DNA of 64,000 nucleotides from Octopus bimaculoides (lineage: Eukaryota), in contig NC_068998.1 of assembly GCF_001194135.2 (NCBI RefSeq), positions 50,092,364 to 50,156,363 of the forward strand. Reading direction: 5' to 3'. The notes beneath the pieces were generated by a model. The model was not told where the DNA came from. It saw nothing but the letters and a program-made list of their open reading frames with translations, and made no database searches. The translations under genes were made by a program, and so were the position numbers. Numbering within the stretch: the stretch's first letter is position 1; every line of letters begins with the position of its first letter. This document shows positions 40,885 through 44,381 of the stretch, piece after piece.

Positions 40885-43800
40885 ATGAATCTTTCTGTGT
40901 TTACATTTGTCCTCTTGTTTGGTGAGTAACAATAACATAGTCATTTCCTTACAAATTAATATGATAAACTTCAGTGTATTTCGTTGTGCAGTCTTAATAT
41001 TGCATGTTAGTTCTTTTCATATTGTACACATGTATATTTGTCTACCAATTGAACTGAGATGTGCATATAACCATTCTCTCTCTCTCTCTCCCCCACACTA
41101 TTTCGCTCTCTCTCCCTCTGTCTCTCGCTATATATATATATATATATATATATATATATATATATATATATATATATATATATATATATATATGTATGTG
41201 TGTGTGTGTGTGTGTGTGTGTGTGTGGGTGTATGTGTGTGTGTGTGTGTGTGTGTTTGTGTGTGTGTGTGTAAATATAAAAGAATCTAGTTCGGATTATA
41301 CCTTTGTGGTATTGAATTACTATAAAATACATTACACGTTTTACTCCATAATGTGATGCGCGTTTCTATTTCGATAAGTGAATAATAAAAATCACAAATA
41401 TCCAAATTTTAGGGGCTGCGATTTCAGCAAGTTGTCCTGAAGTCTCAAGAACTAAATGCAAGAAAGAATTTGACGCTTATAGAAAATTTGACCCTAGATG
41501 CCTGTATGTATTATTAGGCAACTACTATTTTTTTTTTATTTACATGGAAATTATAAATCTTAAGTATATTAAATATAATAGTTTTGGTATCAAATAAAAA
41601 ATATGTATATATGTATACATGTAAAATGAGTGATAGCAATGGGATGAGATTTTCAGAGGATGGAGTTTCAAGTATAGATGTAGAGGTATTTAAATTAATA
41701 GGTCCAGCTTACACAGAGTACAAGCAAGCAGAAAGGTAAAATAGAAGGTGTCCAACGGCAGTTTGTGTGGGCACGGAGATCCATGAGAATGTTGGTAGAT
41801 GTAGTTCATCATAATATGTGGCCGTAATGAACATTGGATTAACAAGTGAACAAATCCATATAGAGTTGTGTAAACAGATAGAAAAATAAATAAATATATT
41901 TTGGTCAGTATGTATGTACGAATATATCTATATCTATGTGTGTGTGTGAGAGAGAGAGAGAGAGAGAAAGAGAGAGAGAGACAGAGAAAGAGAGAGAGAC
42001 AGAGAGACAGAGAAAGAGAGAGAGACAGAGAAAGAGAGAGAGACAGAGAAAGAGAGAGAGAGAGAGAGAGAGAGAGAGAGAAATGGTGACGATTGCGATA
42101 AGTACCTAATGCATCCTGTTCACGGTTACGTATCTTATGCACCAATGAGTGCTGTTTGTTATGTAGTACAGAGTTGTTGTCGGTGATGACAAAGCATGGA
42201 CAGTTTATTTTCCAATGAACAATAAATTTCATTCCAACCAAGAGTTCGAATCAGATATTTTATTTCTAAGATGCTTTACTATGAGACAATAATTCAGACG
42301 TAATTAGGAAGCAAAAACTCATTAACATGTAGTTACAGGTGCGGCACAATTTACATATGTAACAACCACTAGAACCTGGAAATATATATTCCTTCAAAGT
42401 TGATTTGATTACATATAAAGGTAAAAGTTTATGGAAACTCAGCATTTAATTTTATGTAAAGTTCCAAAATTGATTTCTTTCAGGGCATACACCAAATATT
42501 TAAAATGCTTGGGGAAACATTCTTCCATGTGTCATACTATTTTTAGTGAACATCTCGTGTGCTCGGTAAGATTTTTTCATATTAATAATACATATTTAAA
42601 TCAAGGGAAATGTTTATGGCTATTTGATTGAAAAATTCATTCGAATTTATATATAATTGATATTGACTTTGTTCAAAAGATAAGAATGATTATGGTTATG
42701 AAAGCTTTCTTATTATTTCTACAATCAGTGAAAACTCTGGAATTTAATATGGAAATATTTTGTTCAGTTGCATTGGATATATTAAATATGAATTTTGCTA
42801 ATATACTTTTATATGAACAACAATATTCAATACGAACATTGCTGAAACGGTAATATTGTACATGGGAAATCACAAGCACATGGTGTTGCTGGTCAGACAA
42901 GCTCATGTTCAGCTGGCCAGAAAAGGTAGCGAATACGCATAAGTTGACACACTGTCATAACAGTGACACATGCTACAAATTTTATAAAAAGATAACTGAA
43001 GCAAAAAATGCAAATTTGAATTACAGATATTATGATATATATCCGAAAAGGGTTCAATGGAAAAATACATTGAATTACTAATTTTTATTGAATATCCCAG
43101 ATTTGATTTATGAAGCTAGATTCAATCCAGCCTCACTGCGTTGATTAATTTTCACATTTTATTCGCATTGTAATTTCAGCCCGGAAGAGACTCCAGTAGC
43201 CGAGAGAAGGTATATAATTTCATTGCAACACTCCTATAAAACCGTTTCACTGTATTATACAAATTCTTTTTAGACGTAATATTACATAGTTATTGTAGCC
43301 ATACACAGAATATCATTGTAACGGTGATATGTTAGAAAATTTCATATTTCTGAATAACTTCTTAATAACATTTACATTGAGTAGACTAATACATTACATA
43401 GTGTACTGTTGCTTGCCATATATCACTTGCTAATTTCGGTATATAATACATATATATGTATTAAAAACCTCAAGCTCTAATATTTATATCTTCGGTTTAC
43501 TCAACGCAATTGAAATTCCCAAATTATATTAAATAGATAGACTTTTCGACTTTGTTTTCTTTATTAATGTAAAGACTATGTCACCGAATATATGTTACAT
43601 GAGGTCTACATTAAACACACGTTAAAATAAATTAAACAAATTGTCAAGATTGTAGCAGAAAAGATATTGTTTTCTTTGTTAGAAGGCATTCACCCCTTGT
43701 GTTACAATTGAGTCATTTAAAACGAAATCCTTAACTCTCCGCAACTGCAATATATATATATATATATATATATATATATATATATATATATATATATATA

Positions 43801-44381
43801 TATAAATATATGTGTGTGTGTTTTTTATTTATGTATATATTTGTTAATTAGTTTGTTAATATAGCATCGAGCTGAATCGGAATATCGGATATTTATTGTC
43901 CAGGAAAGTAAGATCAGGGTCTATCCAAGCAGAGTTGAAGCTTTTCCTTTAAAGTTGGCAAAGGATTTCAACGGTCAGTTCAAGGCAAATGGTCTTACAC
44001 TATACCGTTTACATTTGTTAGTTACCAAAGTGTGGATTAGCTTTCATCTACACAGGAACCCCACCTGTTGTATCTTGTTTAGTTGTCAAATAAACATTTC
44101 TACTTTTGTATCTGAAAAACAACGAACTTGAATAGTTGAAAAGATCGACATTTCAACCAGTCCTATTGTGTTCTCTATAGGTATTCTTCTAGAAATACCG
44201 TACTCATCTATGTGGGAAACAGGTAATTCATGCAAAACCATGTGACGGCAAATTCTACTATGCATCTCATCAAAATACATACACTATATATATGAATAAT
44301 TTTTTTCTTTTCCCTTTACAGATGAAATTTCGGTCGGTTTTCTTCGTTGCAATTGTAGTTACATTAATAATATATTATTAA
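40885..44381 (+). CDS. Gene G: 99-aa signal-peptide, 6-Cys, putative GPI-anchored protein
   Basis: Exons 40885-40921, 41413-41503, 42484-42565, 43180-43209, 44322-44381: MNLSVFTFVLLFGAAISASCPEVSRTKCKKEFDAYRKFDPRCLAYTKYLKCLGKHSSMCHTIFSEHLVCSPGRDSSSREKMKFRSVFFVAIVVTLIIYY*. Confidence 0.92.

Follow-up and report, generated by a model that had tools for sequence, protein, structure and literature searches.

A tandem family of octopus genes for small six-cysteine proteins with a putatively neuritin-like layout

Does a small cysteine-rich protein of the octopus share its mature domain with neuritin and with the N-terminal domain of the repulsive guidance molecules (RGM-N)? The question is raised by a 64-kb stretch of DNA, the whole of which was analysed and is hereafter called the window, that is 100% identical to CM046618.1:50,092,364-50,156,363 (Octopus bimaculoides chromosome, GCA_001194135.2), and within it by a gene, here termed G, at positions 40885-44381 of the forward strand. 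An earlier reading of the bare sequence (the original prediction) had proposed that the mature domain of G and its paralogs matches the six-cysteine core of neuritin and RGM-N, and that these proteins may be minimal helical relatives of both. Our analysis leaves hardly any doubt that the octopus family is real: it is an octopus-restricted, uncharacterised orphan family with precursors of ~100 aa, encoded in a same-strand tandem array. Very probably it has no demonstrable relationship to neuritin or RGM, and the identity of the C-x8-C-x7-C spacing is most likely due to chance or to convergence in disulfide-stapled helices.

The interval corresponds exactly, from ATG to stop, to a five-exon gene (Table 1), whose spliced open reading frame (ORF) of 300 nt encodes a protein of 99 aa, MNLSVFTFVLLFGAAISASCPEVSRTKCKKEFDAYRKFDPRCLAYTKYLKCLGKHSSMCHTIFSEHLVCSPGRDSSSREKMKFRSVFFVAIVVTLIIYY, and whose introns are all GT-AG, in phases 1, 2, 0 and 0. 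The last codon completed within exon 2 is that of Cys3, and the C-x8-C-x7-C motif is therefore present only after splicing; for the same reason, a contiguous six-frame motif search returned chance matches only. Read across the splice junctions, the strings that had suggested the likeness are exact in G (C-LAYTKYLK-C-LGKHSSM-C), paralog I (C-NAYRKFMR-C-FRGESLF-C) and paralog J (C-EGFFKFMK-C-FQWYDRK-C), with the aromatic residues at +3 and +6 present in all three. The string of J was independently confirmed in RefSeq (XP_052830549 and XP_052830551), and the RefSeq model of J, which has the same five-exon layout, supports the gene model of G. G is an intact but unannotated member of the family.

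To whom else does the family belong? A profile was built from nine mature domains and run by hmmsearch against 1.84 billion representatives, with 15 matches: 13 came from O. bimaculoides ("uncharacterized protein LOC128249xxx"), one was a hypothetical protein of O. vulgaris, and the last (P0123, 655 aa with 11 repeated stretches) proved spurious and was rejected. No relative outside O. bimaculoides and O. vulgaris was found among these 1.84 billion proteins, and a word-based homolog search with the 21-sequence alignment gave only three matches, all known members. The O. vulgaris protein (P0124, CAI9735849, 302 aa) contains three family domains with unrelated sequence between them; it is probably a fused gene model across several tandem paralogs, and its domains indicate that the family is also present in O. 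vulgaris. All O. bimaculoides family proteins looked up sit on one 55.6-Mb chromosome. Pattern and tblastn scans of the window identified at least ten paralogs, all on the forward strand, so that the invertebrate tandem expansion envisaged in the original prediction is borne out, and at least 25 members were counted on chromosome CM046618.1. No description of this octopus family was found in the literature.

Both strings given for comparison proved to be correct: that of neuritin, C-TYWEDFHS-C-TVTALTD-C, comes from a sequence scoring 2e-39 on Pfam NRN1, and that of RGMa, C-AALRSYAL-C-TRRTART-C, from a protein (RGMA) that equals 4uhy_C at 100% over the first 93 residues, including all six cysteines. 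The claim of a matching six-cysteine core held for the x8 and x7 gaps, which are identical, but not for the other three of the five gaps, the frameworks being C-x7-C-x13-C-x8-C-x7-C-x9-C in G, C-x9-C-x24-C-x8-C-x7-C-x27-C in neuritin and C-x4-C-x22-C-x8-C-x7-C-x21-C in RGMa. Alignment of 21 members gave the consensus C1-x7-C2-x13(14,16)-C3-x8-C4-x7/x8-C5-x9/x11-C6, and the full neuritin framework was not seen in the family (x7, x13-16, x8, x7/8, x9/11). C1, C2, C4 and C5 are invariant, while C3 and C6 are each present in 19 of the 21 members; the C3-x8-C4 spacing is kept in all members having C3 (19/19), with Y/F at +3, F/Y at +6, L/M at +7 and F after C4. The C4-C5 gap has many Gly, Asp, Pro and Ser residues and comes in two lengths, x7 (14 members) and x8 (the remaining seven, 7/21). 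The two sister paralogs D and F lack both Cys3 (Arg in D, Ser in F) and Cys6 and form a four-cysteine subfamily; because the two cysteines were lost together, it is likely that C3 pairs with C6. D additionally carries a cysteine in exon 4 (PGRCSVIREK), giving an odd cysteine count.

Does anything beyond the central spacing connect the family with neuritin or RGM-N? A Pfam scan with six and then 21 members (E<=10) gave no match to NRN1, RGM_N, DUF19 or GDNF; against an NRN1 gathering score of 27 bits, the human neuritin control scored 134 bits, and human neuritin also matched Pfam DUF19 weakly (E 0.0088). The sub-threshold Pfam matches of the octopus proteins (CHCH, HTH_16, Thionin and others) were scattered single-member noise and were rejected. 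Alignment of the family by hhalign, for which 16 neuritin sequences/species and three RGM-N sequences from PDB chains were used, gave probabilities of 0.8-1.6% (score 13.4-14.5) against NRN1 and of 0.4-1.1% (score 10.2-13.1) against RGM_N. For 60 column-shuffled targets each, the 95th percentile was 13.8-13.9 for NRN1 and 10.8-13.0 for RGM_N; the scores of the 21-sequence profile (13.6 and 10.2, respectively) fall below it in every shuffle null, with the cysteine columns fixed or not, and are therefore not significant. Sequence and profile searches of the PDB (E<=10) gave nothing relevant, including no RGM-N chain; a multiheme cytochrome (E 0.1) and an ovomucoid (E 0.32) were rejected as noise. 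An RGM_C or vWD-like (von Willebrand factor, type D) domain with a GDPH autocleavage site was likewise not found in the octopus proteins, which are 95-117 aa long and have nothing between the six-cysteine domain and the tail.

Structural modelling was carried out in AlphaFold2 (AF2) with the 57-residue mature domain of G and eight paralogs (nine sequences; the row of paralog I in our alignments carries K in place of N at the exon 2/3 split codon). The model is all-alpha, with a mean predicted local distance difference test (pLDDT) of 82 and a predicted template modelling score of 0.65, and four of the five models reach a pLDDT of >=76. Four short helices are placed at residues 7-13, 16-24, 30-42 and 44-52, of which the latter two lie in exon 3. 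The helix break falls at residue 43, where the x7/x8 indel of the C4-C5 gap is located, and is equidistant from C3 (residue 29) and C6 (residue 56), which would fit a hairpin (helix-turn-helix) closed by a C3-C6 disulfide. The helical reading of the original prediction agrees with this model, in which the beta or three-finger fold named there as the contrary outcome did not appear. On the other side stands the shallowness of the nine-sequence alignment; weighing both, we consider the mature domain likely to be helical, as modelled, and it may represent a new small disulfide-rich fold.

Using the octopus model as query, a Foldseek search of the PDB, which includes RGM-N (4uhy, 4uhz, 4ui0-2 and 4bq6), gave no match at E<=10, and a search of the BFVD viral models gave two matches, both with E>7. 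An AF2 model of neuritin served as a control (pLDDT 62 overall and 75-85 in the core; helices 32-50, 58-81, 87-100 and 107-111), and Foldseek did not find RGM-N with it either. Nor were NRN1 and RGM_N linked by hhalign, and the NRN1 profile found no RGM in the PDB. Three routes (hhalign, Foldseek and profile search of the PDB) thus failed to confirm that neuritin and RGM-N share one "core", nor did the literature yield a structural classification connecting the two. The failed control makes the Foldseek negative a weak one, and a very remote relationship would be beyond the reach of these tools. At the sensitivity available, neither profile nor structural similarity to neuritin or RGM-N was detected, the outcome that the original prediction itself had named as speaking against kinship; the proposed relationship found no support, and convergence on a helical cysteine spacing, which had been put forward as an equal alternative, is the better-supported reading.

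The insensitivity of the tools, which cannot link even neuritin to RGM-N, is also what speaks for a relative of the neuritin/RGM-N domain that is genuine but has diverged far and become miniature, its loops and last helix having been shortened. Such a relative would be in keeping with the identical C-x8-C-x7-C and neuritin's own hydrophobic or aromatic residues at the +3 and +6 positions, with the cysteines that hhalign keeps in register, and with the helical, six-cysteine make-up of all three families as signal-peptide and glycosylphosphatidylinositol (GPI) proteins (for RGM-N, PMC7354924; for the octopus family, helices and GPI signal being putative). In both AF2 models, moreover, the first helix has C1 as its N-cap, and the C3/C4 helix is followed by a break at which C5 is found. 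Against it stand the hhalign probabilities and the profile scores within the shuffle nulls even with fixed cysteine columns, and the absence of NRN1, RGM_N and DUF19 matches in all 21 members where neuritin itself weakly matches DUF19. Three of the five cysteine gaps differ about two- to threefold, and the C4-C5 gap, invariant in the 16 neuritins, is a Gly/Pro/Asp-rich x7/x8 in the octopus. Foldseek gave no RGM-N match, and no bridging homologue was found outside Octopus in the 1.84 billion proteins. We therefore regard a diverged relative as improbable, and still more so the idea that these genes are the first invertebrate, miniaturised relatives of neuritin/RGM-N, expanded as a diversifying GPI surface repertoire possibly for neural or chemotactile recognition. 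The three-cysteine match is exact as a string, but as an argument for homology it counts for nothing.

If the family is an orphan, are its copies functional genes? Exon 1 (37 nt) shows nucleotide identities of 0.65-0.86 among the D-J pairs, most of them 0.73-0.86 and two F pairs at 65%, and the tail exon a mean identity of 66% (85% for H vs I), compared with 41-54% (ungapped) for the mature exons 2-3. The Nei-Gojobori ratio of non-synonymous to synonymous substitution rates (dN/dS) is 0.7-1.1, as computed over 57 codons near saturation. Intron alignments are still possible, at 72-79%, within two groups, one of D, F and G and one of H and I; in gapped local alignments, the mature exons reach 0.59-0.68 (D-G, F-G and H-I) versus ~0.65-0.8 for 200-bp intron flanks. 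The mature exons are thus no better conserved than the intron flanks, whereas exon 1 is better conserved than its own flanks, and within the mature domain only the cysteines and a few core aromatic/Leu positions are fixed. The combination of conserved targeting exons with intron-like divergence of the mature exons points to a diversifying binding surface.

The same rates would also be expected of decay, and several observations favour reading the unannotated copies in the window, G included, as young pseudogenes derived from a small number of expressed members such as J. Pseudogenes, too, would have a dN/dS near 1, and the mature exons are no more conserved than the introns. No word of 5 residues is shared between G and the 5.8 billion proteins of a collection that takes in RefSeq and assemblies of SRA runs, and J is the only called gene in the 25 kb around it, a stretch that includes exons of I. 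F has a weak exon 3 donor (GTCAGA) and a 3-residue deletion after the C3 position; an exon 1 stands orphaned between D and F; and exon 1 of paralog B was looked for but not found. Some of the unannotated copies (A-D, F, H, I and G) could accordingly be silent or decaying. However, at 41-54% identity neutral drift would have produced stops and frameshifts, whereas exons 2 and 3 are open in all nine paralogs having both, with indels that are all multiples of three, in DNA of 32% GC where the chance of a random 58-codon frame staying open is ~1% (calculated from composition). Splice sites are all GT-AG in D, G, H and I, whose ORFs encode 98-99 aa, four cysteines are kept throughout, and conservation of the signal-peptide and tail exons exceeds that of the introns. 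The copies as a group are not decaying, with exons 2-3 open and in frame, length changes in multiples of three, canonical splice sites and four invariant cysteines, and it is improbable that the unannotated ones are pseudogenes. None of the profile-search matches other than J equals a window copy, and the copies other than J (A-D and F-I) appear to be unannotated; with the ORFs of D, F, G, H and I intact, the annotation probably misses several genes.

Where would such proteins reside? After C6, the family proteins continue with a short Ser/Asn-rich stretch on its own mini-exon (PGRDSSSREK in G, DAIDSSNQLK in J), and the last exon encodes an uncharged hydrophobic run of 9-16 aa, followed by 0-6 residues in most members. 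Small-residue motifs (DSSS, NTSN, ESSS and GNSS) lie 8-14 residues upstream of the run. By inspection, this is the layout of a GPI signal, with small residues in the omega region, a polar spacer of ~8-12 residues and a short hydrophobic end, and 9-16 residues would not suffice for an ordinary transmembrane helix. With its signal peptide, small six-cysteine helical domain and GPI-signal-like tail, the family fits the layout of neuritin, the tail as judged by inspection and the helices as modelled.

On this evidence we lean towards GPI anchoring of the family proteins. Speaking against it, the assignment follows rule-of-thumb inspection, and atypical tails with 12-48 residues after the hydrophobic run occur in the members P0129 and P0132 and in the tail candidate of paralog A, which runs ~48 aa past the run. 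The tail could instead make the products tail-anchored-like membrane microproteins, or secreted peptides of pheromone, toxin or antimicrobial type with a cleaved C-terminal propeptide, and indeed a conserved signal peptide followed by a hypervariable, cysteine-framed mature region is a classic secreted toxin or defence signature. Yet the runs are too short to span a membrane and lie near the C-terminus with small-residue clusters at omega-site distance, a dedicated and conserved tail exon is present in every complete paralog, and no dibasic processing sites flank the domain. A role of the tail other than as GPI signal thus appears unlikely.

With GPI anchoring as the favoured reading, the evidence is best accommodated, though only with some confidence, by a lineage-specific, diversifying family of GPI-tethered helical six-cysteine surface proteins that are neuritin-like by analogy. 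The signal peptide encoded by exon 1 would be cleaved as the precursor enters the endoplasmic reticulum, and the domain of ~57 aa encoded by exons 2-3 would fold into four short helices locked by three disulfides, C3-C6 and two others. A GPI anchor would then replace the C-terminal peptide encoded by exon 5, with attachment at the Ser/Asn-rich site of exon 4, so that the small helical domain would be displayed on the outer face of the plasma membrane, where its fast-changing surface may bind variable partners in recognition, receptor modulation or defence.

Cephalopod genomes contain lineage-specific gene expansions with mostly unknown functions. The present family stands in databases only as "uncharacterized LOC" proteins, with most of the window copies unannotated, and it is moderately interesting for cephalopod biology: a predicted compact all-alpha domain with three disulfides, for which no sequence or structural neighbour was found, together with a probable GPI tether, conserved targeting exons and a mature domain diverging at the pace of the introns, makes its members reasonable candidates for recognition, receptor modulation or defence. 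New small disulfide-rich folds are also useful as scaffolds.

The array itself is laid out in Table 1. Paralogs A, D, F, H, I and J each begin with a 37-nt exon 1 of the kind found in G, and mini-exons homologous to exon 4 of G, with the same upstream intron motif, are present in F and H; D has a mini-exon at the equivalent position, and the equivalent exon of RefSeq J is the one encoding DAIDSSNQLK. Exon 4 of paralog C was not found, and an assembly gap lies at 22443-23399; three assembly gaps fall within the introns of F. Exons 4 and 5 of J are located ~520 and ~970 bp past the window end. After the orphan signal-peptide exon, no family exon 2 or 3 was found before the next exon 1 (33401), and it is a leftover of a paralog since lost or else serves F as an alternative first exon. 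A further member, K (GEGTSKLCDTLGQSFCPLEYKGFRDPDPGC / GLLHFLRCFKEIDKKCYKYFSYVPSCW), was observed 4-5 kb beyond the 3' end of the window, so that the array continues outside it, and LOC128249944 lies on the opposite strand ~28 kb upstream. An exon-3-like pattern at 17358-17450 was rejected, as it shows no family similarity except the cysteine spacing.

Table 1 Exons of gene G and of its paralogs in the 64-kb window.
Feature	Positions in window	Strand	Description
G exon 1	40885-40921	+	ATG, signal peptide MNLSVFTFVLLF and first base of a Gly codon; GTGAGT donor; phase 1 intron next
G exon 2	41413-41503	+	Mature N-terminus, Cys1-x7-Cys2-x13-Cys3, AAISASCPEVSRTKCKKEFDAYRKFDPRC; phase 2 intron next
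G exon 3	42484-42565	+	(L)AYTKYLK-Cys4-LGKHSSM-Cys5-HTIFSEHLV-Cys6-S; phase 0 intron next
G exon 4	43180-43209	+	30-nt mini-exon PGRDSSSREK, Ser-rich; candidate GPI omega-site region
G exon 5	44322-44381	+	MKFRSVFFVAIVVTLIIYY and stop; short hydrophobic C-terminal peptide resembling a GPI-attachment signal
Paralog A, exons 1-3	8041-8077, 9170-9263, 9520-9607	+	Tail uncertain, candidate 11383-11580
Paralog B	exon 2 13407-13506, exon 3 14426-14510, exon 4 15607-15639, tail 17097-17156	+	
Paralog C	19902-19935, 20549-20645, 21103-21187, tail 23894-23941	+	
Paralog D, complete, 99 aa	26734-26770, 27144-27234, 28047-28128, 29309-29338, 30188-30247	+	Without Cys3 and Cys6
Orphan exon 1-like signal-peptide exon ("E")	31606-31642	+	MNIFAFIIFLLF then G; GTAAGT donor
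Paralog F, 95 aa	33401-33437, 36428-36518, 37907-37979, 38596-38622, 39489-39548	+	Without Cys3 and Cys6
Paralog H, complete, 98 aa	47148-47184, 47896-47986, 48930-49011, 49308-49334, 50030-50089	+	
Paralog I, complete, 99 aa	52656-52692, 53306-53396, 55178-55259, 55659-55688, 56700-56759	+	
Paralog J	60087-60123, 61531-61630, 63927 onward	+	RefSeq LOC128249947; gene cut by the window end

The surrounding DNA is AT-rich (~32% GC), with abundant (TA)n, (TG)n and (GA)n microsatellites across the window and 13 runs of N (5,377 bases of assembly gaps), mostly flanked by (TA)n microsatellites. An ORF of 125 aa at 19054-19431, with runs of Arg/Lys and then Thr, derives from an AGG/AAG-type microsatellite and was rejected as a gene candidate. 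Duplicated blocks of 95-99% identity were observed at 3797-5184 vs 11117-12473, 3196-3524 vs 6197-6525, 5836-6000 vs 54482-54647 and 6043-6197 vs 13034-13188, and many such blocks adjoin assembly gaps. The largest of them, 3797-5184/11117-12473, contains a tail-like exon, VIFQTIF(V/L)AAVLFIMLF..., at 4066 and 11383, which continues ~48 aa beyond the hydrophobic run; the block may be a sign of one more paralog, located upstream of A, or may stem from recent segmental duplication or from an error of the assembly.

How, then, does the family compare with known systems? None of the sequence tests run placed it in NRN1, RGM_N, DUF19 or CHCH. The best Pfam matches, all sub-threshold, were to the CHCH/twin-Cx9C families (PF06747 and PF16860; CHCH E 0.011 and 16.2 bits versus a cut-off of 27.2 for one member, CX9C E 0.19), in which a stapled alpha-hairpin resembles the C3-x8-C4...C5-x9-C6 pattern around the predicted helix-turn-helix. 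CHCH proteins, however, are made in the cytosol for the mitochondrial intermembrane space and have neither signal peptide nor GPI signal, whereas the octopus proteins have signal peptides, and the resemblance is an analogy of architecture only. The Ly6/uPAR "prototoxins", which are small GPI-anchored, cysteine-rich modulators, and the conotoxin-type and MgCRP-I families are similar in their size of ~100 aa, their signal peptide, single disulfide-rich domain, GPI signal (putative in the octopus) and tandem expansions, and in combining a conserved signal with a hypervariable mature region on a fixed cysteine framework. The mussel MgCRP-I peptides are an example of a diversifying family with a conserved signal and cysteine scaffold (PMC4558851). 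Unlike the octopus domain, which is predicted to be all-alpha, Ly6/uPAR proteins adopt an all-beta three-finger fold with 8-10 cysteines, while the toxin-type families are secreted rather than GPI-anchored, and neither group shows sequence similarity to the octopus domain.

RGM-N (PF06535; PDB 4uhy, 4uhz, 4ui0-2 and 4bq6) resembles the octopus family, in part as modelled, in its helices, its six cysteines in three disulfides, the C-x8-C-x7-C spacing and its place in GPI-anchored proteins; it is a three-helix bundle in which the three cysteines of the motif lie along helix alpha2, and the RGD loop is the alpha2-alpha3 linker directly after C5 (PMC7354924, read with the sequences). It differs in its length of ~70-90 aa, in the x4 and x22 gaps before the motif and x21 after it, and in being always followed by the large, vWD-like RGM_C; it binds bone morphogenetic proteins through the RGD-loop/alpha3 surface. 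None of these features is found in the octopus family.

With neuritin (NRN1, PF15056), the family shares a signal peptide, one small six-cysteine domain, helical by model in the octopus, a GPI-type C-terminal signal, putative in the octopus tail, and the central spacing with its hydrophobic or aromatic positions. The neuritin domain is longer (~85 vs ~57 aa), with gaps of x9, x24 and x27 where the octopus family has x7, x13 and x9, and its C4-C5 gap does not vary in the 16 aligned sequences, whereas that of the octopus family does. In the AF2 model of neuritin, a single helix of 24 residues contains both C3 and C4, and C5 follows two residues beyond it; the octopus model has C3 as a helix cap and, past the length-variable turn, C5 in the opening turn of the following helix. 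The cysteine and helix layouts of the octopus family, neuritin and RGM-N, as modelled, thus appear similar in outline but not demonstrably equivalent. The relatives of neuritin retrieved were all vertebrate, and the neuritin gene is strongly conserved, with column identity averaging 63% across vertebrates, compared with the large and fast-evolving tandem array of the octopus. By analogy of layout, neuritin is nevertheless the closest counterpart of this octopus family among the systems compared.

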